Of a DNA stretch of 64,000 bases, positions 6,809-55,878 are shown piece after piece. A model generated the notes under the pieces. The model made no database searches. It saw only the letters and a list, made by a program, of their open reading frames with translations, and was not told the DNA's origin. The stretch lies in sequence record PV231354.1; one strand, given 5' to 3'. Numbering within the stretch: position 1 is the stretch's first letter; every line of letters begins with the position of its first letter. The position numbers and the translations under genes were made by a program.

Positions 6809-6872
6809 CCCTTCGTTAAGACCCGGCCGCTAGAGTGGCCGGGTCATCAACCCCCCGCAAGGATCGCCCGAC

Positions 6873-7151: not shown

Positions 7152-7168
7152 CCGGAGAACCCCGCCCC

Positions 7169-7492: not shown

Positions 7493-7493
7493 C

Positions 7494-8078: not shown

Positions 8079-8082
8079 AACC

Positions 8083-43900: not shown

Positions 43901-46362
43901 CGGTCAACGCCAGCAGCGGCGACGACGTCAACCTCTACGTCGATCCGGGCCTGATCTATGTCGTGGCCCCGTTCGGCCAGGGCTTCTGGATTTCCGAGGA
44001 CAACTTCGTCCACGCCCTGCCCGATCCGCTGGTCGTGTCGGTCACCACGCCGACCGGCAGCGCGCGCGGCGACGTGCGCATGGTCGGCTCGTTCGCGCCG
44101 ATCATCCTGTCCAAGCTGGATGGATCGGCTGGCGGCGACGGCCTCGCCGAGCCCTATACGGGCGACTGGATCATCCTGGTCTCGCCGCCGGTTCCGCAAA
44201 CGGAACTGAACGCCAACGTCAACGTGGCGATGCCGCCGCCGATCGTCATCAACGGCAACGACGCGGAAGCCTCGCTCGACATCACCGTGCCGTTCAGCGA
44301 CACGGCGGTGTTCATCACCGGCCCCGAGGCGTTGGGTCTGGGCTTCCACGGCGGGCAACTGGGTCCGCCGATCCTGGTCACGCCCCCGGCGGGCGGCCCG
44401 GAGATCAGCGCCAACGGCATCGGCCAGATCGGCACGATCGGCGTTGAGCCGCCGCGCTTCCACTACATCCCGCCGATCACCGTCATCCCGCCCGAAGGCG
44501 TGGCGCTGGACGCCAAGTCGGCCCAGGCCTCCGGCTCGCTGGGCACGATCACCATCGGCGTGCCGACGGGCGGCTATCAGGCCGCTGTCGCCATCAACCT
44601 GCCGCTGCCGACGATCTTCGTCACCACGCCGCAGGCCATGGTCTTCGCCTCGGTCGCCATCAGCGGCGCCCTGAGCACGATCACGCTCACCCCGCCCGTC
44701 GCCAGCCTGACGGCCGGCGCGAACGCGTCCTTCACTCTGCCCGGTCCCATCGTCCTGACCTCGCCCGAGGCGACGGCGACGGCCGGCACGGCGGCCTCGA
44801 CCTCCGGCGCACTGACCACCATCACCCTGACGGCGCCGACTGGTTCGGTCGCGACCGGCAGCGCCGCCTCGGCCACCGGCTCGATCGGCACGATCACGGT
44901 CACGCCGTTCGACGGCAGCGTCTTCATCTCCTACCCCGGTTTTGCCACGGGCGCGATCGGCACGATCACCCTGACGCCGCCGGCCGCGACCGTCAGCAAC
45001 GGCCGTAACCTCTCGCTCGCTTTCCCCGGCCCGATCGTCGTCACCTCGCCGGTCGCCGTACCGCGCGGCTCGGTCGCCATCACCGGCACCATCGGCACGA
45101 TCACGCTCACCGCGCCCATCGGCACGGCGACCGGCGACACCATCTTCGGCACCGGCGACATCGGCACGATCACCGTCACGGGGATCAATGGCGCGGCGAC
45201 CGGGCGCGGCCTGGGCACGGGCGCGATCGGCACGATCGTCGTCACCCCGCCGGCCGCGACGCTCACCACCGGCGCCAACAAGTCCGTCGCCCTGCCCGGC
45301 CCGATCGTCGTCACCGCCCCGACGGGCGTGGGCCGCGTGCCCAGCGCTACCTCGGGCGCGCTCGGCACGATCACGATCACCAGCACGCCCGAGGCTACGG
45401 TCTCGGCCGGGCAGGGTCTGTCGGGTCAGATCGGCACGATCACGATCACCCCGCCCGAGGCGCAAGGCCAGGGCGCGGTCTTCATCCAGGCGACCGACGA
45501 ACTCGTCGTTCAGACCCTGCCGCCGCAGGCGATCCTCTTCCAGGAAGCCACGGTCATCGTCGGCTTCCCGACGATCTACCTTGTCGCGCCCGAGGCGATC
45601 ACCTACTCGCTGGCCGAGTTCGCCTCGATCACCCTGCTGCCGCCGGACGCCTATGTGACCGTGCCGCTGCCGCTGGGCAAGAACCGCATCCGCTATCGCC
45701 GCAACAACACGGCGGGACATGCGCCCGCGAGCCTGCTGCCCCACGAGATCGCGCTGAACGAGACCGACGGCCTGCTGTTCACCCGCGACGGCGCGGGCGC
45801 GGTCAAGTCCACGCCGCTGGGCTTCATGCACGGCGAAGGCCTTCCGCCGCCGGCCACCGACGATGGCAAGGTGCTGTCGGGCGGGATGTCCTGGGAGACG
45901 CCGTTCACCCAGTACCTGCTCCCGGTCCGCAACGCCCCGCCGGCCGGCGCGCGCATCGCCCTGGCCGAGGGCGTGGTCGGCACCACGACCTTCACGCCGA
46001 CGCTCGACGTCACCTACACCCGTCCGTTCTTCGTGGCCAAGACCATCGACATCCAGGCGCTGTCGATCGAGGTCGTGGGCACCGCCGTCTCGACGGCCGA
46101 ACTGGGCCTGATCGGCTGGTCGCTCACCGGCACGCCGGGCGCGGCGATCGTCACCGGCACGGTCAGCACCAGCACGGCGGGCGTCAAGTCCGCCGCCGGC
46201 ACGGCCACGGTCTTGACGCCGGGCTGGTACGCCGCCACCTTCAAGGTCACCGGCGCGGCGGGGGCTTCGTTCCGGGCTCCCACCACCCCGACGGCGATCG
46301 CGCCGGACTTCACCACCGCGCCGGGCGCGCCCGCGCCGGTCATGGCGACCCTGGAGACCTAA
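37945..46362 (+). CDS. Giant Gly-rich filament/fibre protein (candidate head filament)
   Basis: 2805 aa; five x-x-WG(A/G)GGGG Gly-rich domains, a LamG/concanavalin-like domain, many GxIGTIT repeats and a fibre adaptor motif (HEIALNETDGLLF). Confidence 0.8.
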   Translation: MVDLVAGTPASVAYSGSAVEYVVKAAGQVDIYLWGGAGSGGYYANGSGNANKFGGAGGYTNARFMVDVGDIITVEVGQGGRVPTGSGTTASAGGLGGWPDGGFGAINSGAAWVAPGGGGGSTRIYKNGDLVAVAGGGGGATGFYSGGNGGGALGMASTDASSGAGGTQLAGGVAGSGTLAVQSGGYFRGGQASTAANVSNAYTGGGGGGGFYGGASNGGGSGAHGSGGGGSGWLSQATDVAGACRVAPQDGTGAPINPAGITIPAGTAQGGVGPTVASTGWASITPGGNGFAYLALTDIGATASALPSGSSTLSYTGTRQVYEVTDICSVDFEMWGGGGGGGFYTSGGNAARFGGAAGYTKLTRILYPGDIVEVEVAQGGQAPSGVSQTGGAGGWPNGGSGGRPAAAAPNFGGGGGSTNVWVNGRLLAIAAGGGGSTGFYYGGVGGGRFGLQSTDQTTNNGTGGTWGGVNAVSSQGRGYFLQGGHGSPIESPTVAIATAGAGGGGGYYGGGGAKGGSGTHGSGGGGCGYTSGDNTYNRVMQAGTPATGAPYDPGTKPAGVGVGGTGGSSAGTTGPGGDGAINLTVTPLTSLPTLPTGKTVFSFTNAAEHYVAGTTGLMALKVWGAGGGGCTRSSGTLRRGGGGGFFKVDIVKINQGDIVTFVVGEGGKGMPGPNLGGRGGFPNGEYGNAGDATGGNAGGGGSSHVYINGKLVGVAGGGGGGAISFDGGTAGLASYPPSGDGFGPSGSSLFYGGFSPQRGAEGNNRGVFMLAGIGQIDGGTIDTPNNLAGGGGGGGYWGGAGSAPNNSRFQPGGPGSTYITANYVGTQQAGTTSGTNLSDPDWGSSASVGGQGSNTPGNSVTNGGHGRIVCSFDIPTLLNESVSANVPVASAVQTFMVGNDGTITLKAWGAGGGGSMMTANSGSELAGGGGYAAATLDLKKGQILRVYNGAGGNGAVYTSGVSGAFVGTGGPGGWPDGGQGGMHVSGIFGGGGGSSRVYVDDILLLVAGGGGGGGIHTATTTAGGGGGTTGGNSDTVTVFNTGGQTYRGGWNTGRTTDATTSGSGFKGGAGYLAGSTASTSNIAHGGGGGGGLYGGSGSGSTNASSTGWLGGAGGSGFVADGWDVTEYDYLRDYVVLQYSFDTPSGVADDARKLNTLLLDTAPTTTTSGPKFGTTCLTMSAGHLTTDIPAIGQQDFTLEGWFNPASLTTGVMMIIGDQSINGLSLHYYPSATVLGLRYNNADPSGATLDTKYTDSARAANVWAHYAISRDINGTRVYKDGILVSTTTGSPFSITATTLTLGNYRSIAGASTRFVGKIDEVRLTVGVARYRQNFKPQQFRNKRTLGLTGASTVQAGSSGNGLPASTGVSGYAAGRGVGAAVKTTPANGNPGGDGQINYFLATSTVAATGPIGTVQVGGLITAAAGAFYPLPAAGTTVVHPYTGSRYNYSVDDPGGARIKVEMWGAGGGGCSATNSSTSTGGGGGGYTVYEMDLVQGDKITLQTPSGGFGSNTAGGSDASGINAGGYPDGGNGYRPAFTAFNGGGGGSARMWAGGDLAAVAGGGGGGAYGSVAYDFAGGPGGGSSGGSGGYDGVNATFPNTGGTQSVGGTGTPNGVSGSFMQGGVGGTTISVANNGPGGGGGYYGGGGGGAYKAAGGGSGYINTTLSGYRTGSTSGGSGNLPGGMGSPNYASGIGVGSNGKAGVRDGGNGRIVLTVITPTPGNAAGLIGTVNVSGLNTFGTLVGTPTGAIGTVNVVVPVGTSGQPAFASGVLPVIGLGPPETIPQAQAIVIVPINDQTSLLVSPPDHAPFAIDAEGTGDLGTITVTSFNSTQTAAANATPALPTVTLTAPEADAVEIPPVLASGALVTIPVTAPEASTQVIPPVETSGDIGTITLVTLNGDASTNNNVATSGDIGTITLTALDGSAQGDDLAEGLIGTITVTVPTAVVQQSAEATGDIGTISVYAIEGGQPADASGDIGTIQIVPLGVSVNASSGDDVNLYVDPGLIYVVAPFGQGFWISEDNFVHALPDPLVVSVTTPTGSARGDVRMVGSFAPIILSKLDGSAGGDGLAEPYTGDWIILVSPPVPQTELNANVNVAMPPPIVINGNDAEASLDITVPFSDTAVFITGPEALGLGFHGGQLGPPILVTPPAGGPEISANGIGQIGTIGVEPPRFHYIPPITVIPPEGVALDAKSAQASGSLGTITIGVPTGGYQAAVAINLPLPTIFVTTPQAMVFASVAISGALSTITLTPPVASLTAGANASFTLPGPIVLTSPEATATAGTAASTSGALTTITLTAPTGSVATGSAASATGSIGTITVTPFDGSVFISYPGFATGAIGTITLTPPAATVSNGRNLSLAFPGPIVVTSPVAVPRGSVAITGTIGTITLTAPIGTATGDTIFGTGDIGTITVTGINGAATGRGLGTGAIGTIVVTPPAATLTTGANKSVALPGPIVVTAPTGVGRVPSATSGALGTITITSTPEATVSAGQGLSGQIGTITITPPEAQGQGAVFIQATDELVVQTLPPQAILFQEATVIVGFPTIYLVAPEAITYSLAEFASITLLPPDAYVTVPLPLGKNRIRYRRNNTAGHAPASLLPHEIALNETDGLLFTRDGAGAVKSTPLGFMHGEGLPPPATDDGKVLSGGMSWETPFTQYLLPVRNAPPAGARIALAEGVVGTTTFTPTLDVTYTRPFFVAKTIDIQALSIEVVGTAVSTAELGLIGWSLTGTPGAAIVTGTVSTSTAGVKSAAGTATVLTPGWYAATFKVTGAAGASFRAPTTPTAIAPDFTTAPGAPAPVMATLET

Positions 46363-46365
46363 GGC

Positions 46366-47034
46366 ATGTCGACCGACATCACCATGCCGCCTGACACGAC
46401 GATCTTCGCGGACGTCAAGCTCAATGGCGGCGCCGGCGCGCCCGTCGATCTGGCCGATGGCGAACTCTACATCGACGAGGCTGGACGCAAGCTCTATGTC
46501 GAGACCGTGGTCGGCGTCCAGCCGATCCCGCTCGACGTCGGCTACATCCCGCGCCGGCCCAGCGGCACGCCGCTCGACCACGTGGTCACCAAGACCGCCA
46601 CCGGCTCCGAGTGGGGGCCGCTCCAGGGCGGCGCGGGCGGCTCTCCGTTCGACGCGGCTGAGTTCCGCGTGCCGGGCATCGCGCCCACGGGCCTGGACAC
46701 GGTCGTTCTGCCGGGCGCGTCCGGTGGCATGGCTCTCTTCGAGATGCCGCTCCAGGACGTCCTCCTGAGCGTGCGTGTACACGCCTCCGCCGGCGTCGGC
46801 GCGGTAACCCTGGGACTCTACCCGTTCAACGGCTCCCTGGGCTCGGAAATCTTCGCCCAGACCCTGACGTTCACCGCGCCCGAGACCCAACTGGTGCCCG
46901 TCTCCCTGGCCTTGACGCCGGGGGTGTACGCCTGGGTGTGGACGGGGGCGTCCTCCGTGACTCTGGACGCGGTCAAGGGCTCCCTGCCCTGGGCGACGAG
47001 CGAGCAGGTCCACCCCGTGGCGATGAAGTTCTAA
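46366..47034 (+). CDS. Fibre-associated protein
   Basis: LADGELYIDEAGRKLY adaptor motif shared with its neighbours. Confidence 0.7.
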   Translation: MSTDITMPPDTTIFADVKLNGGAGAPVDLADGELYIDEAGRKLYVETVVGVQPIPLDVGYIPRRPSGTPLDHVVTKTATGSEWGPLQGGAGGSPFDAAEFRVPGIAPTGLDTVVLPGASGGMALFEMPLQDVLLSVRVHASAGVGAVTLGLYPFNGSLGSEIFAQTLTFTAPETQLVPVSLALTPGVYAWVWTGASSVTLDAVKGSLPWATSEQVHPVAMKF

Positions 47035-47810
47035 TGGCTATCCAGAACCCCCACTCCACCACGCCGGGCGTCATGCCCCACCTGACGCCGGGCGAGATCG
47101 GCGTCAACAAGGCCGATGACATCCTCTGGTTCCGGTCCGAGGGCCGCCGCGTGCCGATCATCCTGAGCGATCTGGATCGGGCGCCGCCGCTCGACGGCCT
47201 GACCGGCGCGCCGCTGACCCTGGAAGGTGGCCAGCCGATCTGGAACGCGCATCTGGCCCCGTCCTCCGTGGTCAATGGGCAGGTCAAGGTCGATCTGCCG
47301 CCGGCGACGGGCCTGCACGCCATGCCCAGCGTCCTGCTGCAAGGCCTGGGAGCCGATCGCGCCCTGGCGGCCAACGATCTGGACCTCTCGCCCTTCTACG
47401 TCCGGTCCGACTCCATCACCCTGACCCAGTTGGCGTTCAGCGTCCGCTCGGCGGGCGCGCCGGCCATGCGGGTGGGGATCGTCGACAGCTTCGGCGTGGT
47501 CCAGGCCGACATTCTGGTCGCCGCGCCCGTGGTGGGCGCCAACGTGGTCAACCTCTCGCCGGTGCTGACGCTCCAGCGCGGCGTCTACCGCACGATCCTG
47601 GCAACCACCGGCGCGGTGACGATCGGGGTGGTCACGGGCGCGCGCATGGAGCAGGGCTGGGACATCATCGGGGACACGCCCTCCTTCATCCACGGCTACA
47701 GCGGCTCGAAGAACACCGGCGGGGGGATCGGCAGTTTGCCGGGCCTGACCGCGCGGCGCTCGGGCGTGCCGGGTCAGGATCATTCGGTCCTGATGCGCTG
47801 GACGGCGTAG
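47034..47810 (+). CDS. Fibre-associated protein
   Basis: LTPGEIGVNKADDILWF adaptor motif; TAATG coupling. Confidence 0.7.
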   Translation: MAIQNPHSTTPGVMPHLTPGEIGVNKADDILWFRSEGRRVPIILSDLDRAPPLDGLTGAPLTLEGGQPIWNAHLAPSSVVNGQVKVDLPPATGLHAMPSVLLQGLGADRALAANDLDLSPFYVRSDSITLTQLAFSVRSAGAPAMRVGIVDSFGVVQADILVAAPVVGANVVNLSPVLTLQRGVYRTILATTGAVTIGVVTGARMEQGWDIIGDTPSFIHGYSGSKNTGGGIGSLPGLTARRSGVPGQDHSVLMRWTA

Positions 47811-47982
47811 TGGGGAGAGCCGGGTGGGGCTTTGTATCGCTGGGGGAGCGAGGGACGGGCCGCTCCCCGGCGGCCCACCCGCTCTTTATAGACGGCCCTT
47901 TCCCGGCCCGCAAGACGTGAATCTTGACATGGTGGAAGATCGGGGTTAACCTGCGCGCTCATCTGGAGTTTCGAGCGCCACC

Positions 47983-48246
47983 ATGGCTGAGCTTGTCCGC
48001 ATCTATCACCCTGAGACGAACGAGCCGTTCGACGTGATCCCGTCGACCGCCGAACGTCTGCGCCTGGGTGATGGTCCCGACGGGCTGGTCTGGCTCTCGC
48101 AGCCCTTCGAGCGCGTCGCTGTCGAAGCCGCGCCGGAAGCCCCCAAGGGGCGAGGTCGTAAGCGCGTCAGCGCGCCCGTCTCGGAAGAAGCCGAAGACGA
48201 CGGGTGGCGTGACGTGCCGACCGAGGAAGATCGCGAAGCCGCGTAA
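47983..48246 (+). CDS. Hypothetical acidic protein
   Basis: Downstream of late promoter 47914; codon bias. Confidence 0.75.
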   Translation: MAELVRIYHPETNEPFDVIPSTAERLRLGDGPDGLVWLSQPFERVAVEAAPEAPKGRGRKRVSAPVSEEAEDDGWRDVPTEEDREAA

Positions 48247-48290
48247 GGCGCTTCGTCTTCCACTCTGCTGAAATTCGGTCTCAGTCCCAT

Positions 48291-48366
48291 GTCGGTCTAG
48301 CTCATGGGGTAGAGCGGCGGTCTCCAAAACCGCGCGTGGCAGGTTCGAGTCCTGCGTCCGGCGCCA
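48291..48366 (+). tRNA. tRNA-Trp(CCA)
   Basis: Cloverleaf; loop CT-CCA-AA; encoded CCA end. Confidence 0.9.
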
Positions 48367-48370
48367 TTTC

Positions 48371-48445
48371 GCATCCGTAGTATATAGGTGATTACAGCGC
48401 GTTGCCAACGCGTAGAGTCGGGTTCGAGTCCCGACGGATGCTCCA
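48371..48445 (+). tRNA. tRNA-Gly(GCC)
   Basis: Loop TT-GCC-AA; U73 CCA. Confidence 0.9.
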
Positions 48446-48449
48446 TTTC

Positions 48450-48523
48450 GCGGGTATAGCTCAAAGGGAGAGTTGCTGCCTTCCAAGCAGAAGATGCGAG
48501 TTCGAGCCTCGCTATCCGCTCCA
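48450..48523 (+). tRNA. tRNA-Gly(TCC)
   Basis: Loop CT-TCC-AA; U73 CCA. Confidence 0.9.
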
Positions 48524-48831
48524 ACCTCGTGGTGAGGTGAGAACGCCCTCCTCATGCACCGCTTCGGCGGTAAAGTAGGCTCCAGCCGAAGAGATGCGGG
48601 ACCAGGGGACCCCGCCACCACGAACGAAGTGCGCCCCAGGTACGCCTCTGACCGAGAAAGCCCGCTGGCCGTGGGTGAAGTGTATGGTCAAGCGTCTGGG
48701 TCCCCGTCCGCCAGGACCGGCGAAGGCCATATGCGCCGAATTCCTGGACCGGATCGTAGGAGGGGAGCGTTGGCGCCGGCCCAGCAGGGAAGGGTGAAGA
48801 GCCCAGCCGGCAATTTTCTTCAACAACAAGC

Positions 48832-48860
48832 TTGACAGCCGTCGAGTTTCGTGAGAGCCT
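48832..48860 (+). promoter_or_regulatory. Promoter P1 (Glu/Asp tRNA unit)
   Basis: TTGACA-17-GAGCCT; closely similar to P2. Confidence 0.7.
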
Positions 48861-48870
48861 CCTCAACATT

Positions 48871-48933
48871 ATGACGCACCTCCTCACCCGTTACGAACGC
48901 GAGGCCACCGGCCTCGATACCACCACCGCCTAA
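48871..48933 (+). CDS. Putative leader peptide 1 (MTHLLTRYEREATGLDTTTA)
   Basis: Starts just after the predicted TSS; contains GAA, GAG and GAT codons; followed by hairpins, then tRNA-Glu and tRNA-Asp. Confidence 0.5.
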   Translation: MTHLLTRYEREATGLDTTTA

Positions 48934-48965
48934 AAGCGGTTTTGGTCCGAGGCCTCTTGTGATGT

Positions 48966-49043
48966 GGCCCGGTCGTCTAGCGGTTTGCAGGATTCCTGAC
49001 TTTCAATCAGGAGAGCGGAGTTCGAGTCTCCGTCGGGCTTCCA
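48966..49043 (+). tRNA. tRNA-Glu(TTC)
   Basis: Loop CT-TTC-AA; CCA end. Confidence 0.9.
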
Positions 49044-49068
49044 CACCCCCAACTCATCTCTGAGCTTT

Positions 49069-49143
49069 GGTGCCGTCGTATATGGGTTATTATCACCGGC
49101 TGTCTCCCGGTGGAAACGGGTTCGAGTCCCGTCGGCATCGCCA
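49069..49143 (+). tRNA. tRNA-Asp(GTC)
   Basis: Loop CT-GTC-TC; G73 CCA. Confidence 0.9.
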
Positions 49144-49191
49144 GCCCTCGCAGCAAATCCAGGTTCCAGCGCGGCTGTTCCGCGCGCCTGC

Positions 49192-49428
49192 ATGCACGAG
49201 GCTACCATGTTTTTCGATCCCTCCTCGCAGTCGAGCGACGCGCTCCTGCGCCACGTCTCCACCCAATCTCCGTATGCGGAAGCGGCTCGCACCGAGTTGC
49301 TGTCCCGAGGCCTCGTTCCGCTCCTGACGCGGTTCAACGGCTGGCGCCTCGCCCCGAGCGCGCCGTTTCCGCAGCACCTCATCCCGCGCCCCGATCCGCT
49401 CGCGAAGTACACGTGGCGGGCGGGATGA
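49192..49428 (+). CDS. Hypothetical protein inside the tRNA array (start may be 49207)
   Basis: Fills the gap between tRNA-Asp and P2. Confidence 0.55.
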   Translation: MHEATMFFDPSSQSSDALLRHVSTQSPYAEAARTELLSRGLVPLLTRFNGWRLAPSAPFPQHLIPRPDPLAKYTWRAG

Positions 49429-49447
49429 AAAATATTCACCACGACGC

Positions 49448-49476
49448 TTGACATCCGTCGGGAGTTGTGAGAGCTT
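49448..49476 (+). promoter_or_regulatory. Promoter P2 (Pro/Thr/Lys/Leu/His/Ala/Ser tRNA operon)
   Basis: TTGACA-17-GAGCTT. Confidence 0.75.
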
Positions 49477-49569
49477 ATGGACTGTCACGGATCACGACAC
49501 TCCTCGGAGTGCAAAAGCGTGATCCTTCGTTTTTCACGGCCGCCAGCGGGTGGCCAGTCGAGAGTTGTC

Positions 49570-49707
49570 ATGTTCGCCTTGTCGCATCTCAGCCTGAGCA
49601 CGAAAGCCGCCTCCCCGGCGACGCTTTCGCTTGCCCTGCTGGCGACGGCCGCGAAGCCCTCGACCAAGCCGACCACCTCGGCCTCGCACTCGACGGAGAC
49701 CCACTAG
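49570..49707 (+). CDS. Attenuator leader peptide 2 (MFALSHLSLSTKAASPATLSLALLATAAKPSTKPTTSASHSTETH)
   Basis: Codons 3-42 encode only A, L, S, H, T, K or P, the seven amino acids of the downstream tRNAs. Confidence 0.85.
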   Translation: MFALSHLSLSTKAASPATLSLALLATAAKPSTKPTTSASHSTETH

Positions 49708-49809
49708 GGCTCTCGTCTCGGGTGCAGGCCTTGGAGCCGCACCCGCTACCTACATCCTGTAGACCTAGCGCAAGGCGGCTCCTCACCAGGGAGACCGCCT
49801 TTTCTTTTT
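49680..49809 (+). terminator. Attenuator 2: alternative hairpins and intrinsic terminator
   Basis: Terminator AAGGCGGCTCC/GGAG(A)CCGCCTT + TTCTTTTT (49772-49809); antiterminator GGAGCCGC (49733-40) pairs with GCGGCTCC (49775-82). Confidence 0.85.
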
Positions 49810-49821
49810 CGCGTTGATCAT

Positions 49822-49897
49822 CGGGGTGTAGCTCAGTCGGTAGAGCGCTCGGTTCGGGACCGAGAGGCCGTGGGTTCGAGTCCCGCCACCCAGACCA
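49822..49897 (+). tRNA. tRNA-Pro(CGG)
   Basis: Loop TT-CGG-GA; CCA end. Confidence 0.9.
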
Positions 49898-49904
49898 ACG
49901 CCAT

Positions 49905-49981
49905 CGGGATGTAGCTCAGTTTGGGAGAGCGCGCGGCTGGGGGCCGCGAGGCCGCAGGTTCAAGTCCTGCCACCCCGACCA
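49905..49981 (+). tRNA. tRNA-Pro(GGG)
   Basis: Loop CT-GGG-GG; CCA end. Confidence 0.9.
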
Positions 49982-49986
49982 ACAAC

Positions 49987-50059
49987 GCTGTTGCGCGTGG
50001 CTTCGCGCCCACCCCTTGGTATGGGGCGGTAGAAGGTTCAATTCCTTCCAGCAGCACCA
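49987..50059 (+). tRNA. tRNA-Thr(GGT)
   Basis: Loop TT-GGT-AT; G1:C72, C2:G71; atypical D arm. Confidence 0.8.
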
Positions 50060-50064
50060 ACAAC

Positions 50065-50134
50065 GCCGATGCCTCTGGGAGGACGCGCCTTTCGTAAGGG
50101 TGCGAGGTGGGTTCAATCCCCACTTTCGGCTCCA
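50065..50134 (+). tRNA. tRNA-Thr(CGT), short D arm
   Basis: Loop TT-CGT-AA; CCTC-TGG-GAGG D hairpin. Confidence 0.8.
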
Positions 50135-50189
50135 TCAAACAGCCTGCGGGCTATATCGGAGATCAAGTTTCATAGCCTCCAGGCTATAT

Positions 50190-50276
50190 GGATGTGTCAC
50201 CTCAGTGGCGAGAGGAACGGGCTCTTAATCCGTCAGCGCAAGCTCACCGTGGGTTCGAGTCCCACCACATCCTCCA
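50190..50276 (+). tRNA. tRNA-Lys(CTT) with long variable arm
   Basis: Loop CT-CTT-AA; AGC-GCAA-GCT extra arm. Confidence 0.85.
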
Positions 50277-50281
50277 ACAAT

Positions 50282-50371
50282 GCACAAGTGACCCGAGCGG
50301 CGAAGGGCGTCGACTTTTAATCGACTAGGCGTCCAGCCTCACCGAGGGTTCGAGTCCCTCCTTGTGCTCCA
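50282..50371 (+). tRNA. tRNA-Lys(TTT) with long variable arm
   Basis: Loop CT-TTT-AA; AGGC-GTCCA-GCCT extra arm. Confidence 0.85.
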
Positions 50372-50374
50372 TGT

Positions 50375-50461
50375 GCGAATGTGGCGGAACTGGTAGACGC
50401 GCCGGCCTCAGGTGCCGGTGCCCTTCGGGGCGTGTGGGTTCGAGTCCCACCTTTCGTACCA
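50375..50461 (+). tRNA. tRNA-Leu(CAG)
   Basis: Class II; loop CT-CAG-GT. Confidence 0.9.
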
Positions 50462-50468
50462 ACGACAT

Positions 50469-50556
50469 GCCTTGCTGGCGGAAGTGGTAGACGCACTGTT
50501 CTCAAAAAGCAGGCCGGGCGACCGGGCTCTGGGTTCGATCCCCAGGTGAGGCACCA
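50469..50556 (+). tRNA. tRNA-Leu(CAA)
   Basis: Class II; loop CT-CAA-AA. Confidence 0.9.
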
Positions 50557-50563
50557 AGACTGA

Positions 50564-50651
50564 TGCGAAGTGGCGGAAACTGGTAGACGCACCGGCATGA
50601 GAGGCCGGCGCCCTTCGGGGCGTGAGGGTTCGAGTCCCTTCTTCGCGACCA
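50564..50651 (+). tRNA. tRNA-Leu(GAG)
   Basis: Class II; loop AT-GAG-AG. Confidence 0.9.
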
Positions 50652-50731
50652 ATGTCCCGATCGGGAAGATTCCAGGCGGCGCGGCGCTCGCGACACCCGG
50701 ATTTTCCCGATCGGGAAGACGACGAGATTAT

Positions 50732-50802
50732 GCTGATCGCCGCTGGGCGGGGAGCGGGTTGTGTCCCCGCTAGGCACGGTTCGATCCCGTGGGTCAGTAC
50801 CA
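50732..50802 (+). tRNA. tRNA-His(GTG), short D arm, A73, no G-1
   Basis: Loop TT-GTG-TC; A73 without G-1 matches the known alphaproteobacterial tRNA-His type. Confidence 0.8.
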
Positions 50803-50807
50803 GATAC

Positions 50808-50878
50808 GGGGTATGCGCAGGGCGCAGGCATCCTTTGCAAGGAAGTCGGGGTGGGTTCGAGTCCCACATACTCCACCA
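50808..50878 (+). tRNA. tRNA-Ala(TGC)
   Basis: G3:U70 pair, A73; loop TT-TGC-AA. Confidence 0.85.
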
Positions 50879-50882
50879 ACAT

Positions 50883-50972
50883 GGAAGGTCAACCGGACAG
50901 GCGCGCCGGGACTGCCTCGAAAGCAGATCGCACTCTCCGGGGTGTGGGGATCGAGACCTCGGCCTTCCTCCA
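50883..50972 (+). tRNA. tRNA-Ser(CGA)
   Basis: Class II; loop CT-CGA-AA. Confidence 0.85.
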
Positions 50973-50976
50973 ATAT

Positions 50977-51066
50977 GGTGAGCGAACGGGACAGGCGTGC
51001 CCGGTCCGCCTGGAAAGCGCGACGCACTCTCCGGGGTGTGGGATTCGAGTTCTCCGCTCACCGCCA
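50977..51066 (+). tRNA. tRNA-Ser(GGA)
   Basis: Class II; loop CT-GGA-AA; G73. Confidence 0.9.
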
Positions 51067-51070
51067 ACAG

Positions 51071-51160
51071 GGTAGGCGAACCGGACAGGCGCGCCGGCGC
51101 CGTTTGCTAAACGAGCGGCACTCTCCGGGGTGTGGGATTCAAGCTCTCCGCCTACCGCCA
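51071..51160 (+). tRNA. tRNA-Ser(GCT)
   Basis: Class II; loop TT-GCT-AA; G73. Confidence 0.9.
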
Positions 51161-51436
51161 TTTTGATGTTGACGCCGGCCAGCACCGATGTCATACGTCA
51201 CGACAGAGCCAACGCCCTCGGCCGGGTTGGTGGATGTGCCGGTTGCATCGCGCCCCGTCGAGCCCTAGTAGCTCTTGCCGTGGAGTTTTCCGCCTCCCTC
51301 CCAGACAAGGAGGCGGACCCCTACATCGCGATCCAGTGATCGTCGGCGACGGGCGCCGTCAGAGCCCCTTGCGCGCGGGAACGCTGCGGAGGGGATCGTC
51401 CCGACCACATTTTTCGACCCACGTTAACTTTTCTTC

Positions 51437-51465
51437 TTGACCTTCCCGAAAACGTAGTGTAGCTT
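51437..51465 (+). promoter_or_regulatory. Promoter P3 (Tyr/Phe/Val/Ile/Gln/Asn/Arg tRNA operon)
   Basis: TTGACC-17-TAGCTT; ATG 8 nt downstream, so a probably leaderless mRNA. Confidence 0.75.
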
Positions 51466-51472
51466 TCCCGTC

Positions 51473-51568
51473 ATGAGCAAGTCGTACCGTCAATTCGTGC
51501 AGATTCAGGTCGTCCGGAATTTCCGGGCGGGCCGTTCGCGCATGGATGATGGCGGGACCTTTATCTAG
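51473..51568 (+). CDS. Attenuator leader peptide 3 (MSKSYRQFVQIQVVRNFRAGRSRMDDGGTFI)
   Basis: Codons 5-18 (TAC CGT CAA TTC GTG CAG ATT CAG GTC GTC CGG AAT TTC CGG) are all read by downstream tRNAs. Confidence 0.85.
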   Translation: MSKSYRQFVQIQVVRNFRAGRSRMDDGGTFI

Positions 51569-51634
51569 GTCCAGACACCTCAACCCAATTCGCGAAAGGC
51601 CCGCCTGGACACCCAGGCGGGCCTTTTTCTTTTT
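51512..51634 (+). terminator. Attenuator 3: 1:2 hairpin, antiterminator and intrinsic terminator
   Basis: Terminator AAAGGCCCGCCTGG-ACAC-CCAGGCGGGCCTTT + TTCTTTTT (51595-51634); leader segment 51523-51540 pairs with 51591-51608. Confidence 0.9.
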
Positions 51635-51691
51635 CCGTTTCGCTGATCCGCAGGAGATCGCAGATGAACAACGGGGGCTAGTCCTCCACAT

Positions 51692-51776
51692 GGATGCTTA
51701 AAGCTGGAGGGCTCCAGCCGGGGGCTGTAAACCCCCTCTCTTCGGAGGAGTGGTTCGATCCCACAAGCATCCACCA
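51692..51776 (+). tRNA. tRNA-Tyr(GTA), atypical D arm
   Basis: Loop CT-GTA-AA; class II arm; GCTGGAG/CTCCAGC extended D stem. Confidence 0.85.
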
Positions 51777-51781
51777 ATCAT

Positions 51782-51857
51782 GGACTCGTAGCTCAGCAGG
51801 TAGAGCGCCGGCTTGAAACCCCGGAGGTCGGAGGTTCGATTCCTCCCGTTTCCACCA
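51782..51857 (+). tRNA. tRNA-Phe(GAA)
   Basis: Loop TT-GAA-AC. Confidence 0.9.
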
Positions 51858-51862
51858 ACAAC

Positions 51863-51938
51863 GCCCGATGAGCCAGATGGGAAGGCACCGCTTTGACATG
51901 GCGGCATTGAGAAGGTTCGATTCCTTCATCAGGCACCA
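51863..51938 (+). tRNA. tRNA-Val(GAC)
   Basis: Loop TT-GAC-AT. Confidence 0.9.
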
Positions 51939-51943
51939 ACCAC

Positions 51944-52019
51944 GCAAGTGTAGCTCAGTTGGTAGAGCAGCGGACCGATAATCCGCCCGTCCCTGGTTCG
52001 AGTCCAGGCATTTGCACCA
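51944..52019 (+). tRNA. tRNA-Ile(GAT), C33
   Basis: Loop CC-GAT-AA. Confidence 0.85.
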
Positions 52020-52026
52020 TTTCTGA

Positions 52027-52102
52027 TGTGGCATAGCTCAGGGGTCAGAGCGCGCGCTTGATAAGCGTGAGGTCGGTGGTTCGAGACCACCTGTCACTAC
52101 CA
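52027..52102 (+). tRNA. tRNA-Ile(GAT)
   Basis: Loop TT-GAT-AA. Confidence 0.9.
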
Positions 52103-52136
52103 ATTCCCAGGCCCGGTGGAGATGCGCCGGTTCTGT

Positions 52137-52210
52137 AGGCGATTAGCTCAATGGTAGAGCAGGGGTGCCACATACCTCGGTCGTAGGTTCGATTCCTACA
52201 TCGCCCACCA
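52137..52210 (+). tRNA. tRNA-Val(CAC), G32/C33
   Basis: Loop GC-CAC-AT; A73. Confidence 0.8.
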
Positions 52211-52216
52211 ACATGT

Positions 52217-52290
52217 TGAGGGTTCGTCTAACGGTAGGACGCCTGGGTCTGGTCCAGGTAATCTAGGTTCGAGTCCTAGCCCCTCATCCA
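52217..52290 (+). tRNA. tRNA-Gln(CTG)
   Basis: Loop GT-CTG-GT. Confidence 0.9.
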
Positions 52291-52296
52291 AGTTGT

Positions 52297-52370
52297 TCTC
52301 GGGTCGTCTAATGGTAAGACATCTGGTTTTGGTCCAGAGGATTGGGGTTCGATTCCTTGGCCGAGAGCCA
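52297..52370 (+). tRNA. tRNA-Gln(TTG)
   Basis: Loop TT-TTG-GT; G73. Confidence 0.9.
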
Positions 52371-52387
52371 ACTGCTTTAGAGTTCAT

Positions 52388-52462
52388 TCCAGTCAATGCA
52401 CAAGGTGTGCAGCGGCACTGTTAATGCCTGTGAGCCCGGTTCGATTCCGGGGTCTGGAGCCA
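52388..52462 (+). tRNA. tRNA-Asn(GTT)
   Basis: Loop CT-GTT-AA; G73. Confidence 0.9.
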
Positions 52463-52487
52463 ACACGCCGGCCAAGGCCGGTCATGC

Positions 52488-52570
52488 GCCCTGGTAACCG
52501 AGGGGGATTACGAATCCCTTAGTCGTAGCAGGAGTTGAAAAGGGTGGTTCGAATCCACTCCAGGGTGCCA
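52488..52570 (+). tRNA. tRNA-Arg(ACG)-like RNA lacking a D arm
   Basis: Acceptor GCCCTGG/CCAGGGT, 7-nt link, loop TT-ACG-AA, long variable region, normal T arm and CCA. Confidence 0.65.
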
Positions 52571-52577
52571 AATCTAT

Positions 52578-52660
52578 AGCGCGCAGGCCGATCAGGATCA
52601 TCGTCAGGCGTCGCCCTCCGAAGGCGAAGAGGCCCGGTTCGAGTCCGGGGCGCGCTGCCA
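52578..52660 (+). tRNA. tRNA-Arg(CCG), enlarged D region
   Basis: Loop CT-CCG-AA; G73. Confidence 0.8.
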
Positions 52661-52663
52661 ACT

Positions 52664-52741
52664 GCGCGGGTAGCTCAACGGAACCAGAGCAGCCGTCTTC
52701 TACACGGTGGGTTGGGGGTTCGAGTCCCTCCCCGTGCGCCA
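52664..52741 (+). tRNA. tRNA-Arg(TCT)
   Basis: Loop CT-TCT-AC; G73. Confidence 0.9.
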
Positions 52742-53332
52742 AAACTTGACGGGCAATGCCGAATCGCCCAACTTCGACCCTGGCTCTCGGTGGGCCACGA
52801 TTGCACGCCGTCGGTGCCCTGGCCGTACACCCAGGGAGCAGCCCGGCGGCGTTCCAACACGGTTTCTGGACGATCTTCGAACGCGGCTTGCCGTGGAGGG
52901 GTGCTGGATAGGGCCGAGGTAGGAGGAACCATCGAGCATCTCCTAATCCCGGCCTGGGCCTCCTGGGGGCTCCGCTGGGTCGATCAGGGCCTGACCCGAC
53001 CCCGGAGATGCGCCGACCTAGATCACCCAGGATCGCTGGGTCGGTTGAAAGGGTCTGAAATTTTCTGGCTCCTATGTGTTGACACGCATTTCGGAGCCGG
53101 CTACAACCCTCCTCGTAGAGCGGCGCTGGGGCCTGAAGGCCCCAATCGTTGAGCCTCTGCGTTGTCGTCAGAAACGGCCCGCCGGCATCCCGCCGCGCGG
53201 GCCGTTTCGTCATGGGCGTCATGCGACCTTGAGTCCACCGTGGGTAGTGTCGTGAATCTTGACTTTCGACCACCTTTCCGGTAGCTTCCCCTTCATCACC
53301 AACGCTCATAAGTCGGGGACTAGAGAGCCGAT

Positions 53333-53731
53333 ATGTCGCAAGACCACACCGGCTCCGCAACGCAGAGCCAAGAACACATCTTTCGTAAGCTGGATGAGCT
53401 TGGCGCAATGCACATGCGTACCCGCGAGGACATGGCCGAAGTCAAGGAGAAGGTGAAGACCATCGCCTCCTCTCAGGAGCGCTTTGAGCGCGACGTTTGG
53501 CGCGAGATGGACATTCGCCACGCCGAGACCAAGGAGCAACTGGCCGCCATCAAGAATCAAACCGCCGATCGGATCGACGAGATCGAGGCCAAGGTGAACA
53601 CCATTCGCGAGGAGCGGATCGCCGAAAAAGCCCAGTGGCGTGGCCCCGAGAAGGTCATTGCCGGCATCGTCGCCCTGGCGGGCGGCGTCACCGCGATCGG
53701 CGTTCTCTGGAGCATCTTCAAACCCCACTAA
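53333..53731 (+). CDS. Coiled-coil protein with C-terminal TM helix (possibly holin-like)
   Basis: Amphipathic helices, then VIAGIVALAGGVTAIGVLWSIF. Confidence 0.6.
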   Translation: MSQDHTGSATQSQEHIFRKLDELGAMHMRTREDMAEVKEKVKTIASSQERFERDVWREMDIRHAETKEQLAAIKNQTADRIDEIEAKVNTIREERIAEKAQWRGPEKVIAGIVALAGGVTAIGVLWSIFKPH

Positions 53732-53836
53732 GCCTACAGTCAAGCTTGTTCGCCTGCGGCCAGAAGTCGCGGTTCTTGACACCCCCCAGCGGCCCGAGCT
53801 AACCATAGGGTCATCTGTTCCTGGGGAGTTTCCTAG

Positions 53837-54058
53837 ATGGCTGCTGCGCTTACCCTCGTCTCCTGCGAGACGAACTTTTCGACCACCACGGACACCGATC
53901 CGGACGCGGCGCACGAGCGCCTCATTCTGGTCCTCAACACCGCCTCAGAAGCGGGCCTTGGTGAAATGACGTTGGAAGTCAAAGAAGAGATCGAGGCCCT
54001 GCTCAAGCAGGCGTCTATCGAACTCTCGAACTGCCGGATCGTGGGGGGAGTTCCTTAA
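53837..54058 (+). CDS. Hypothetical protein
   Basis: GGAG SD; promoter at 53766. Confidence 0.6.
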   Translation: MAAALTLVSCETNFSTTTDTDPDAAHERLILVLNTASEAGLGEMTLEVKEEIEALLKQASIELSNCRIVGGVP

Positions 54059-54080
54059 TCGCCATCCCAGAGGGAGCGAC

Positions 54081-54947
54081 GTGTCCGAGTCTTCCGAATT
54101 CAACCCGCTCGACCAATCCCAGTTCCCTCCTCGCCTCACCAAGGCTGCTGCGCGTCAGGCGCGGCGCCAGGAGCGCAGCCAGAAAAAGGACCCCACGGCG
54201 AACAAGCCCAACTACAAGGCGCTCGAAGCCAAGACTGAACGCCAGAAGCGCTACATCCAGGCGCTGAAGGCCGGCGAGAGCGCCATCGCCATCGGCGGGG
54301 CCGGCACGGGGAAGACCTACATCCCGTCCCGGCTCTTCGCCAAGAAGCTGATCGAAGGCAAGACCGAACGCCTGATCATCGCCCGCGTCACCGCCTCGCG
54401 GGCCAAGCACGCCCTGGGCTTCCTGCCCGGCAAGCTCGAAGCCAAGCTGGCCCCGTGGCTGGTGCCGGTGATCGAGGGCGTCAAGGCGGAAATGAACGCC
54501 CAGACCTATACGCAGTTGCAGGAGGCCGGCAAGATCGAGTTCGCCTCCTTCGAGCACATGCGCGGCCGGACCTTCGGCGAGTGCTGCGTCCTGCTGGACG
54601 AGGCCCAGAACGCCGACTACAAGGACCTGAAGATGGTCCTGACCCGTTGGGGTGAGAACGCCCAGTACGCGGTCACCGGCGACGTCGACCAGATCGACGT
54701 GGACGACTCCGGGCTGGACACGGTCATCGACATCGTCGAGGCCAACGACATCCCCATCCACGTCATCGAGTTCACCGACGAAGACGTCGTGCGCTCGCCC
54801 ATGGCCAAGGCCTGGGTCAAGGCCTTCTCCGCCCACGAGGGCAAGGACGGCCGGCCCCGGCGCTTCCACCGCCCGGCTGTCAGGAATCTTGACGCTTTGC
54901 CGGCGTTCATCGATAATGGCCATGTCACGAAACCCGTGGCATCGTGA
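54081..54947 (+). CDS. phoH: PhoH-like ATPase
   Basis: GGAGTGKT Walker A; LGFLPG; FEHMRGRTF; LLDEAQN; TGDVDQID; DVVRSP. Confidence 0.95.
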   Translation: MSESSEFNPLDQSQFPPRLTKAAARQARRQERSQKKDPTANKPNYKALEAKTERQKRYIQALKAGESAIAIGGAGTGKTYIPSRLFAKKLIEGKTERLIIARVTASRAKHALGFLPGKLEAKLAPWLVPVIEGVKAEMNAQTYTQLQEAGKIEFASFEHMRGRTFGECCVLLDEAQNADYKDLKMVLTRWGENAQYAVTGDVDQIDVDDSGLDTVIDIVEANDIPIHVIEFTDEDVVRSPMAKAWVKAFSAHEGKDGRPRRFHRPAVRNLDALPAFIDNGHVTKPVAS

Positions 54948-54964
54948 CAAAGACGTAGAGCACC

Positions 54965-55486
54965 ATGGCCTTCACCTTCGTTGTTGAGACCGGCGCCGGC
55001 GACCCGGCCGCGAACTCGTACTGCGACGTGCAGTTCGCGGACGACTACATCTACGCCAACGTCTACTCGAACACCGCCTGGGCCGCCTTGGAGGACGAGG
55101 ACAAGGAACGCTTCCTGGTCCGCGCCTCCAAGTACCTGGACCGGACGGTGCAATGGGCGGGGGAGAAGATCGAGGAGGACTCCGGCCTGCGCTGGCCGCG
55201 CGCCGGGGTCTATGACGTCGACGGCTTCCTGATCCCCAGCGACGCCATCCCGCAGCAGTTGATGGAGGCCACCGCCGAAATGGCGGCGGCGCTCCTCAAC
55301 AACGACTGGACCTCGCCGCAGACCACGCGCGGCATGAAGGAAATCCAGGTCGACGTCATCGAACTGAAGTTCGACACCGAGGTCCAGCGCGGCTCGATGC
55401 CGGACATCGTCATGCAAATCCTGGAGGGCCTGGGCGTGGTCAAGACCGGCCAGCGCCCGGCCTTCAAGAAGATCATCCGGCACTAA
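54965..55486 (+). CDS. Head-tail connector/adaptor (DnaT-like ssDNA-binding family)
   Basis: ANSYCDV..AD.Y...LVRASKYLD...GLRWPR...IP.QL.EATAEMA. Confidence 0.8.
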   Translation: MAFTFVVETGAGDPAANSYCDVQFADDYIYANVYSNTAWAALEDEDKERFLVRASKYLDRTVQWAGEKIEEDSGLRWPRAGVYDVDGFLIPSDAIPQQLMEATAEMAAALLNNDWTSPQTTRGMKEIQVDVIELKFDTEVQRGSMPDIVMQILEGLGVVKTGQRPAFKKIIRH

Positions 55487-55878
55487 TGGCGCTCGAAGCG
55501 TTCATCCAGTCGCAGGTCCTGGTTGCCTTCAACCAGCTTGACGACCTCTGCAAGCGCTGGACCTATGTCCAGCGTTCGGGGACTGGCGTGCGCGACGTCG
55601 AGAGCGGCAAGACCGTCTACCCCACGACCGAGATCGACATCCCCAAGGCCGTGCGGGTGCGCTTCAAGAAGGACGAGAAGGACAAGACCGGGCAGGTCCT
55701 GGTCGGCGAGAAGCTCCTCTTCCCGCGCGTCTACCTGCCCAAGGGCTTCGAGACCAAGACGTCCGACTACCTCATCGACGAGGCGGACGTGATCTGGGAG
55801 ATCATGAGCGACCTGTCGGACCCGGCCAAGGCCGTGGCGATCCTCCAGGTGCGCACCTCCCGGATCGTGACGCCGTGA
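55486..55878 (+). CDS. Head closure/neck protein
   Basis: Position; G..D..SGKTVYP motif. Confidence 0.7.
   Translation: MALEAFIQSQVLVAFNQLDDLCKRWTYVQRSGTGVRDVESGKTVYPTTEIDIPKAVRVRFKKDEKDKTGQVLVGEKLLFPRVYLPKGFETKTSDYLIDEADVIWEIMSDLSDPAKAVAILQVRTSRIVTP

Follow-up and report, generated by a model that had tools for sequence, protein, structure and literature searches.

Here, we analyzed a 64,000-nucleotide (nt) stretch of DNA from record PV231354.1 (the whole of which is called the window below), in which a cluster of 14 transfer RNA (tRNA) genes, cluster C, is preceded by a leader region, leader C. Judging from its sequence and from RNA folding models, leader C is probably a ribosome-mediated, that is, leader-peptide, transcription attenuator that gates the 14-gene phage tRNA operon. 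Upstream of cluster C lie, in this order, a TTGACA promoter (P2), a hairpinned 5' untranslated region (UTR), a 45-codon open reading frame (ORF), and a strong intrinsic terminator. Downstream of this terminator only tRNA genes are found (49822-51160). P2 is the only TTGAC box at 49448-51169, with none further up to the end of cluster C, and the cluster C tRNAs would therefore depend on read-through of the terminator.

Over bases 49400-51200, the window is 100% identical to Caulobacter phage RBC8 at matching coordinates, and its identity to CcrRogue is 99.9%. It thus represents the left 64 kb of the genome of RBC8, a jumbo siphophage of the phiCbK-like type (Dolichocephalovirinae, Poindextervirus). 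The tRNA genes of the window all lie at 48.3-52.8 kb on the plus strand and form four clusters: A (Trp, Gly, Gly), B (Glu, Asp), C (Pro x2, Thr x2, Lys x2, Leu x3, His, Ala, and Ser x3), and D (Tyr, Phe, Val, Ile, Ile, Val, Gln, Gln, Asn/Ile, and Arg x3). All five lineages sampled, namely, Poindextervirus, Shapirovirus, Colossusvirus, Bertelyvirus, and three Brevundimonas phages, have a promoter, a short ORF, hairpins, and a tRNA cluster in the same arrangement.

A preliminary description of the window, made from its letters alone, had named P2 (TTGACA, 17 nt, GAGCTT), a hairpinned 5' UTR, an ORF at 49570-49707 restricted to the amino acids of the downstream tRNAs, a cascade of alternative helices ending in a terminator, and 14 anticodons. 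All of these were recovered. P2 is present at 49448-49476, the 5' UTR holds two hairpins that are each more stable than their shuffles, every helix of the cascade and the terminator exists and is far more stable than shuffles (z of -3.3 to -5.6), and the anticodons are as listed, with varying confidence in the calls. The description of the ORF, with 40 consecutive codons in the set and 42 of 43 up to the stop, was also correct.

The leader C ORF is restricted to the amino acids of cluster C

Codons 3-42 of the ORF (40 in a row) specify no amino acids other than Ala, Leu, Ser, His, Thr, Lys, and Pro, and this set is that of the amino acids of the cluster C tRNAs. When codons 3-45 are considered, 42 of the 43 are in-set, the sole exception being E43. 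The 40-residue run is the longest for its set in the six frames of the window, and the next longest, a Pro/Thr/Ser/Ala stretch, has only 19 residues. The in-set share is 0.44 in the window's long ORFs with high G+C at third codon positions (used as a proxy for genes) and 0.47 in the six-frame translation. The chance of a 40-residue in-set run is thus 0.44^40, or about 5e-15 per position. The run includes the rare residues Lys (three) and His (two) and is devoid of Gly, the commonest residue (12.6%), and of Arg, Val, and Asp. The homologous ORF is annotated as a hypothetical coding sequence in CcrRogue, phiCbK, Swift, BL10, BL57, Ccr10, and RBC57, and the ORF is presumably translated.

In folding models, the choice between terminator and antiterminator depends on ribosome position

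Stabilities of helices are given in kcal/mol, with z scores relative to dinucleotide shuffles. Five segments, the first in the last codons of the ORF and the other four downstream, would form either helices 1:2 and 3:4 (antiterminator state) or helices 2:3 and 4:5 (terminator state). Helix 1:2, together with the stop-codon hairpin that it encloses, reaches -32 kcal/mol (z -4.9), and the competing 2:3 helix (anti-antiterminator, 49719-45) reaches -17.6 kcal/mol (z -3.3). The antiterminator 3:4 (49733-82; GGAGCCGC/GCGGCTCC, extended by CGCTA/TAGCG and CTAC/GTAG) has a stability of -26.4 kcal/mol (z -5.6), and the terminator stem (49774-99) has one of -18.3 kcal/mol (z -4.3). The antiterminator uses the 5' arm of the terminator at 49775-82, and the two folds are mutually exclusive. 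The terminator ends 12 nt before the first tRNA gene (Pro), and phiCbK and CcrSwift have an annotated rho-independent terminator at the homologous site.

The leader was folded with ViennaRNA at 30 C with a ribosome footprint of 30 nt, which describes equilibrium only. The free leader was bistable, with probabilities of 0.49 for the terminator and 0.51 for the antiterminator. With the A site at codons 38-42 or at the stop codon, the terminator rose to 1.0, and with the A site at codon 33, the antiterminator reached 0.9. When only the RNA 3' of the ribosome was folded, the terminator was at least 0.9 for codons 34-46; over codons 1-33 it was low for the most part but rose to 0.6-0.9 at codons 18-20 and 26-28.

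The same cascade with the same direction was obtained for Colossus and CcrSC, whose sequences are unrelated. In these leaders, segment 3 is the common target of two competing segments, 2 and 4, which are near-identical, and a ribosome at the stop codon gave 70-80% terminal hairpin, compared with 10-30% for most earlier positions. By our reading of the folds, the out-of-set residues near the end of the ORF (E43 in the window; R33 and V37 in CcrSC) are encoded in the helix-forming 3' segments.

A second leader matches a second cluster

A unit of the same design, leader D, occupies 51437-51640, directly 5' of cluster D. An ATG lies 7 nt 3' of its predicted promoter (TTGACC, 17 nt, TAGCTT), and the messenger RNA (mRNA) of this unit is therefore probably leaderless or nearly so. 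The ORF contains a 14-residue core, YRQFVQIQVVRNFR, made up of exactly Tyr, Arg, Gln, Phe, Val, Ile, and Asn, the amino acids of cluster D. This core is the longest run for its set in the six frames of the window (14 residues; the next, an Arg-rich run, has 9). An ORF segment at 51525-41 pairs with 51590-51607 to form an antiterminator of -46 kcal/mol (z -6.4). The two leaders thus match two different clusters.

Leader composition is kept while leader sequence changes

Across the five lineages, leader C peptides differ widely in sequence and are nevertheless 84-95% in-set, as seen in MTFSTHKPSTLKPATGAASLAHASLLTPATSKPSLSRSL of Colossus, TTLSHKLSLKSAPSALLSLAHAPATLKSTPATVASTSETFS of Bajun (after a GTG start codon), and MTRIHTTLPTAKPASTGALTLASWPASSKPLLRHSAVLA of CcrSC. 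The cores of leader D reshuffle their residues within the set in a similar manner (YRQNVQNIRVVRFNR in Bajun, YRNNVRQIRVRQFNL in Colossus, and YRQFVRQIQFVRVNR in CcrSC); by hand tally, 2 of about 17-20 changes are out-of-set, and the in-set share expected is 24%.

Seven close relatives could be aligned. Their leader C ORFs show 13 amino acid replacements, 12 of which are in-set, whereas random single-base changes would be expected to leave 47% in-set (P about 9e-4), and only two synonymous differences. Ccr10 carries an in-frame insertion of 9 nt (three codons). That replacements stay in-set while synonymous changes are few points to selection on the tRNAs that read the ORF and not on the peptide. 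Conservation is uneven in the manner that attenuation would lead one to expect: invariant columns make up 59% of codons 17-29 and 92-95% of codons 30-42 and segments 2-5, and a neighboring protein is only about 86% identical between the seven phages. Segment 1 is invariant, as is the stem of the terminator, the loop of which varies.

In Bertelyvirus only, a tRNA-Trp gene lies at the 3' end of cluster C (CcrSC, 6740-8400 of locus L014; also L015 and L016), and, likewise only there, leader C has an internal Trp codon (TGG, in ...LASWPASS...). As a co-change this is no more than suggestive, since it concerns a single lineage, and it is weakened by Marchewka, where the leader ends in a C-terminal Trp and tRNA-Trp has not moved. 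Two further features of Bertelyvirus were seen: Thr(GGT) has moved to the first cluster, and the Arg tRNA of cluster D is ACG, with three of the four Arg codons of the leader D core being CGT, CGC, and CGA. A scan of IMG/VR with the leader motif LSH...LS returned 64 loci, all of which were chance matches.

Proposed mechanism

In the mechanism that we propose, host RNA polymerase would start at P2 and transcribe the structured 5' UTR and the 45-codon ORF. A fast ribosome would already cover segment 1 when the polymerase arrives at the T tract; helix 2:3 and the terminator would then form, and transcription would stop before tRNA-Pro. When charged in-set tRNAs are scarce, decoding would be slow, the ribosome would lag, helices 1:2 and 3:4 would form, and the polymerase would read through into the tRNA genes. 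The decision would be a kinetic race, with the transit time over the 40 in-set codons determining whether segment 1 is covered in time. As the ORF is limited to the operon's own amino acids, this transit time would be informative only about tRNAs that are among the operon's products. The outcome would be negative feedback that matches the operon's tRNA supply to demand, and we expect regulation to run in this direction in vivo.

It is conceivable, although we hold it doubtful, that phages across the subfamily use such leaders as a closed-loop, demand-sensing tRNA supply, in which every large tRNA operon would have its own test-track ORF and a shortage of in-set tRNAs would open it. The shortage might arise from amino acid limitation, host shut-off, late-infection demand, or host anticodon nucleases that cut Lys, Tyr, His, Asn, or Arg tRNAs. 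In that case, the attenuators would act as built-in sensors, releasing replacement tRNAs, many of them structurally atypical, just as host tRNAs fail.

Evidence against attenuation and alternative explanations

Attenuation, as put forward in the preliminary description, is supported by the anatomy of the leader, by footprint folding, by the leader D pair, and by a composition kept across five lineages. Several observations weigh against it. The Shine-Dalgarno-like sequence of the ORF, GAGAG at 49560-64, is a weak match. Six of the 40 codons are GCC (Ala), which the phage Ala(UGC) tRNA cannot read under standard wobble. Half of the 14 tRNAs are structurally atypical, and four require relaxed thresholds to be called. 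In the models, leader D allows read-through within a narrow window (A-site codons 10-12). The leader that precedes cluster B is not enriched in Glu or Asp, having two Glu and one Asp (one and one in Bertelyvirus) in 20-21 residues, and was left out of the supporting evidence. The terminal hairpins of Colossus and CcrSC lack a good U tract. In the Brevundimonas leaders, the segment layout can be drawn but the equilibrium fold remains the antiterminator at every ribosome position, and these leaders were dropped as support.

The direction of control given in the preliminary description (stalling gives antitermination, and full translation gives termination) agrees with folding for the window, Colossus, and CcrSC; folding of the Brevundimonas leaders does not reproduce it. 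Its statement that the leader contains a codon for each of the 14 anticodons is true but not significant: when synonymous codons were redrawn for the same peptide, all 14 were covered in 18% of the trials as well, and this match was discarded as evidence. The covariation check that it had suggested turned up two compensatory pairs only, both in hairpins that are common to the two states. Among the seven alignable phages, helices 1:2, 3:4, and 4:5 never vary; covariation is thus uninformative about the switch.

The poor U tracts of Colossus and CcrSC, the missing switch of the Brevundimonas leaders in equilibrium folding, and the narrow window of leader D would all be compatible with leader translation controlling tRNA output by a route other than the modelled hairpin competition, and so would the conserved 5' UTR hairpins, which have no role in the simple model. 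Rho might terminate transcription on an untranslated leader, ribosomes might determine whether the precursor is protected or processed (RNase E/III), or a stalled or terminating ribosome might simply occlude the terminator arm. We nevertheless regard this as unlikely, given that the terminator of the window is canonical, that the four competing helices are individually significant and the two states nearly isoenergetic, and that Colossus and CcrSC follow the same segment logic with sequences of their own. It is more improbable still that the ORF encodes an ordinary low-complexity small protein, followed by a leaky constitutive terminator that sets the ratio of mRNA to tRNA, and that the match to the tRNA set is a coincidence. 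GenBank does label the product a hypothetical protein, Ala/Ser/Thr/Pro-rich runs are common in this G+C-rich genome (16-19 residues elsewhere), and the peptide motifs LSH and LAHA recur between genera. Against this, the run is twice as long as the next one, contains rare Lys and His, and avoids the abundant Gly, Arg, Val, Asp, and Glu. A small protein would also leave unexplained a second ORF (Y/R/Q/F/V/I/N) that is not of low complexity and fits its own cluster. The ratio of replacements to synonymous changes, 13:2 and yet in-set, is unlike ordinary purifying selection, and the exceptions E43, R33, and V37 sit in the helix-forming segments of the 3' end.

Reversed logic, in which efficient leader translation leads to read-through and stalling to termination, so that tRNAs are made only when translation is healthy, appears the least probable of all. 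Stalls at codons 14-18 of leader D and at codons 34-42 of leader C do favor the terminator in the models. However, a ribosome at the stop codon gives about 100% terminator in the window and mostly the terminal hairpin in Colossus and CcrSC, and stalls over most of the ORF favor the antiterminator. Furthermore, shutting off tRNA genes when tRNAs are short would presumably create a destabilizing positive loop. Attenuation with antitermination upon slow decoding is the reading that we prefer.

Promoter and 5' UTR of leader C

P2, a predicted promoter, is of one type with the other TTGAC promoters of the tRNA region; its core is kept in the seven related phages. Both 5' UTR hairpins listed in Table 1 are conserved. 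For hairpin 1, 95-97% of cells are paired across the seven phages, and hairpin 2 shows one compensatory change, from C-G to A-U, in CcrSwift. A role of hairpin 1 as a pause or stability element is a guess. The apex hairpin carries the other compensatory change, from CTAC/GTAG to CAAC/GTTG, in four of the seven phages; it can form in both states and is not diagnostic of either. An in-frame ATG at 49477 was considered as the start of the leader and rejected, as it abuts the -10 box and is missing in phiCbK, Swift, Ccr10, and RBC57.

The AT-richer spacer between Thr(CGT) and Lys(CTT) (about 50150-50185) holds two -10-like GCTATAT boxes, GCTATATC and GCTATATG, without a TTGAC box upstream. We take these to resemble the Caulobacter sigma-73 -10 box, and they may form an internal promoter for the distal part of cluster C.

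Table 1. Positions of the predicted elements of leaders B, C, and D and of selected tRNA genes in the window
Feature	Position	Strand	Basis or remark
Promoter P2: TTGACA (49448-53), 17-nt spacer, GAGCTT (49471-76)	49448-49476	+	Predicted, sequence read
5' UTR hairpin 1: GGATCACG...CGTGATCC, inner CACTCC/GGAGTG stem	49489-49525	+	-18.5 kcal/mol, z -4.6
5' UTR hairpin 2: GGCCGCC/GGTGGCC, just 5' of GAGAG	49538-49555	+	-14.5 kcal/mol, z -3.2
Leader C ORF, 45 codons: MFALSHLSLSTKAASPATLSLALLATAAKPSTKPTTSASHSTETH and stop	49570-49707	+	Sequence read, ORF list
Segment 1, in ORF codons 37-42; pairs with segment 2	49680-49693	+	13 base pairs (bp), one bulge
Segment 2; partner of segment 1 or (49719-25) of segment 3	49718-49730	+	Folding
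Segment 3; 3' part (49739-45) pairs with segment 2, whole segment with segment 4	49733-49748	+	Folding
Apex hairpin CTAC-ATCCT-GTAG, within antiterminator	49750-49762	+	Compensatory change
Segment 4, TAGCG...GCGGCTCC; partner of segment 3 and terminator 5' arm	49766-49782	+	Folding
Intrinsic terminator: 9-bp G+C-rich stem, one bulge, 7-nt loop, then TTTTCTTTTT	49774-49809	+	Predicted
tRNA-Pro(CGG)	49822-49897	+	ARAGORN; Rfam 62.5 bits
tRNA-Pro(GGG)	49905-49981	+	ARAGORN; Rfam 59.7 bits
tRNA-Thr(GGT), atypical D arm	49984-50059	+	ARAGORN default; no Rfam tRNA match
tRNA-Thr(CGT), low confidence	50064-50133	+	ARAGORN 80% threshold only; no Rfam match
tRNA-Lys(CTT), 87 nt, long variable arm	50190-50276	+	ARAGORN; Rfam 50.6 bits
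tRNA-Lys(TTT), 90 nt	50282-50371	+	ARAGORN; Rfam 45.9 bits
tRNA-Leu(CAG)	50375-50461	+	ARAGORN; Rfam 51.7 bits
tRNA-Leu(CAA)	50469-50556	+	ARAGORN default; no Rfam tRNA match
tRNA-Leu(GAG)	50564-50651	+	ARAGORN; Rfam 42.2 bits
tRNA-His(GTG), atypical	50732-50802	+	ARAGORN default; no Rfam match; annotated in BL10
tRNA-Ala(TGC), atypical	50808-50878	+	ARAGORN default; Rfam 23.2 bits, below gathering score
tRNA-Ser(CGA)	50883-50972	+	ARAGORN 90% threshold
tRNA-Ser(GGA)	50977-51066	+	ARAGORN 90% threshold
tRNA-Ser(GCT)	51071-51160	+	ARAGORN 80% threshold; annotated correspondingly in CcrSC and BL9
Leader B ORF, 20-21 codons, before Glu/Asp: MTHLLTRYEREATGLDTTTA	48871-48933	+	Sequence read
Leader D ORF: MSKSYRQFVQIQVVRNFRAGRSRMDDGGTFI and stop	51473-51568	+	Sequence read
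Leader D terminator, 15 bp	51594-51627	+	Predicted
tRNA-Tyr, cluster D	51690-51777	+	Missed by tools; full-length alignment with annotated tRNA-Tyr of Bajun and Kikimora

The tRNA genes

With default settings, ARAGORN called 10 of the 14 cluster C tRNAs, and the gathering score of the Rfam tRNA model was reached by 6 of the 14. The tRNAs that fail Rfam have intact acceptor stems and CCA ends by our reading of the sequence. Both tRNAs that were examined closely, Thr(GGT) of cluster C and Tyr of cluster D, have unusual D arms. Annotation in related phages is available for several of the weaker calls. Thr(CGT) is similarly placed in the clusters of CcrSC and BL9, there directly after a single Pro gene. 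Ser(CGA) and Ser(GGA) are annotated at the corresponding places in Ccr10 and CcrSC, and at these places phiCbK has tRNA-Ser given without an anticodon.

The variable arm of Lys(CTT) is like that of class II tRNAs in the ARAGORN drawing. The drawing is for this gene only, and the length of Lys(TTT) suggests that it has a similarly long arm. Both predicted Lys tRNAs end in U73-CCA as read from the sequence, and annotated Lys genes of 84-97 nt occur in related phages. The spacer between Leu(GAG) and His contains two copies, 50 nt apart, of a 15-mer with a palindrome, TCCCGATCGGGAAGA (50655-50669 and 50705-50719), which may be a processing or protein-binding site.

In total, about a dozen tRNA-like genes fail the Rfam tRNA model or default ARAGORN (49984-50133, 50469-50556, 50732-51160, 51690-51777, and 52388-52660); these are Thr x2, Leu(CAA), His, Ala, Ser x3, Tyr, Asn/"Ile(AAT)", Arg(CCT), and possibly Arg(CCG). 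The Tyr gene differs from its counterparts in Bajun and Kikimora by changes in the acceptor and D stems that appear paired by eye. The gene at 52388-52462 is Ile(AAT) according to ARAGORN; an alternative loop, CU-GUU-AA, would make it Asn, and it occupies the place of an annotated tRNA-Asn in other genera. GenBank lists only 20 tRNAs for CcrRogue. According to the 2012 genomics paper, Thr and Tyr tRNAs are missing from all of these phages, and those for Asn and His are confined to Colossus; candidate genes for Thr, Tyr, His, and Asn are all present in the window.

Other clusters and flanking elements

The leader B unit (48832-48965) has its own TTGACA promoter and a hairpin and is kept in all lineages sampled. 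Its peptide has a conserved Arg-Glu and a conserved Asp, together with Glu-x-Glu outside Bertelyvirus. An attenuator for cluster A was considered and rejected: the cluster is preceded by an ordinary 87-residue ORF that is by eye not enriched in Trp or Gly, and in other genera by enzyme genes. Directly 3' of tRNA-Gly(TCC), a skipping-rope RNA was found at 48527-48623 (Rfam RF02924, 45.8 bits; gathering score, 36.7). Colossus and PW have in common a stretch of about 150 nt (CATAACGTCGTTCGTAATGCGGCTGCGC...CACCCACAAG), 5' of the leader C promoter (about 3400-3640 in locus L006 and 3460-3650 in locus L007), which is nearly identical between the two phages and looks structured by eye.

Relation to known attenuators

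Leader C shares its anatomy with the hisL, trpL, leuL, and pheL attenuators. Like these, it has a short, promoter-proximal ORF enriched in codons cognate to the operon, which lies between promoter and genes and is kept as an ORF in all lineages sampled. It also has an intrinsic terminator before the first regulated gene, a mutually exclusive antiterminator that overlaps it, and, in silico, an ORF segment whose coverage by a ribosome would select the fold. The cargo is different. To our knowledge, the regulated genes of all described leader-peptide attenuators encode amino acid biosynthesis enzymes or aminoacyl-tRNA synthetases, whereas cluster C consists of tRNA genes. In addition, the classical leaders sense one amino acid in a short run, whereas leader C has seven over 40 codons and is borne by a phage with an alphaproteobacterial host. 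In contrast to trp, where the untranslated leader is super-attenuated, leader C uses five segments and is modelled to be about half read-through when untranslated.

Mixed regulatory codons in one leader peptide are known from the thr operon (Thr and Ile), ilvGMEDA (Ile, Leu, and Val), and ilvBN (Val and Leu). These multivalent leaders likewise sense several amino acids, but theirs are two or three that are metabolically linked, whereas the seven of leader C are unrelated and are grouped by the downstream tRNA genes. Attenuation of a component of the translation apparatus by the supply of charged tRNA is known from pheST, with its pheM leader. There, a synthetase for one amino acid is regulated in a cellular genome, and here it would be the tRNAs themselves. 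By analogy, leader C is most like the thr/ilv leaders and the pheST leader. T-box riboswitches also report tRNA status through a choice between terminator and antiterminator in a 5' leader; however, they bind uncharged tRNA directly and without translation, whereas leader C has a conserved ORF at its center.

Matches to known families were absent: at 46000-56000, no hit was obtained to the Rfam models His_leader, Leu_leader, Thr_leader, Trp_leader, or Phe_leader at E values up to 1, nor to the Rfam T-box model. A general Rfam scan showed nothing of a boxA-type element (Nus antitermination), for which no dedicated search was made. Thus, the comparison with the his operon drawn in the preliminary description stands as an analogy of mechanism and not as homology.

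The phiCbK genomics paper predicted terminators and listed tRNAs, with leaders and attenuation left unmentioned. Full-text literature searches returned no description of leader-peptide control of tRNA genes or of such control in a phage, although further papers may exist. Leader C is best described as a known mechanism with a new target, the tRNA operon of a phage, and as an element kept throughout a phage subfamily.

If this reading is right, it would explain how phage tRNA genes are regulated, a question of current interest now that these tRNAs are viewed as a means of codon supply and of counter-defence. It would also account for the terminators predicted directly before tRNA clusters in phiCbK-like genomes. 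In practice, the amino acid alphabets of the leaders, which include Thr, Tyr, His, and Asn, would aid tRNA annotation, and leader C would provide a compact, modular sensor with a seven-amino-acid input in the model host C. crescentus.

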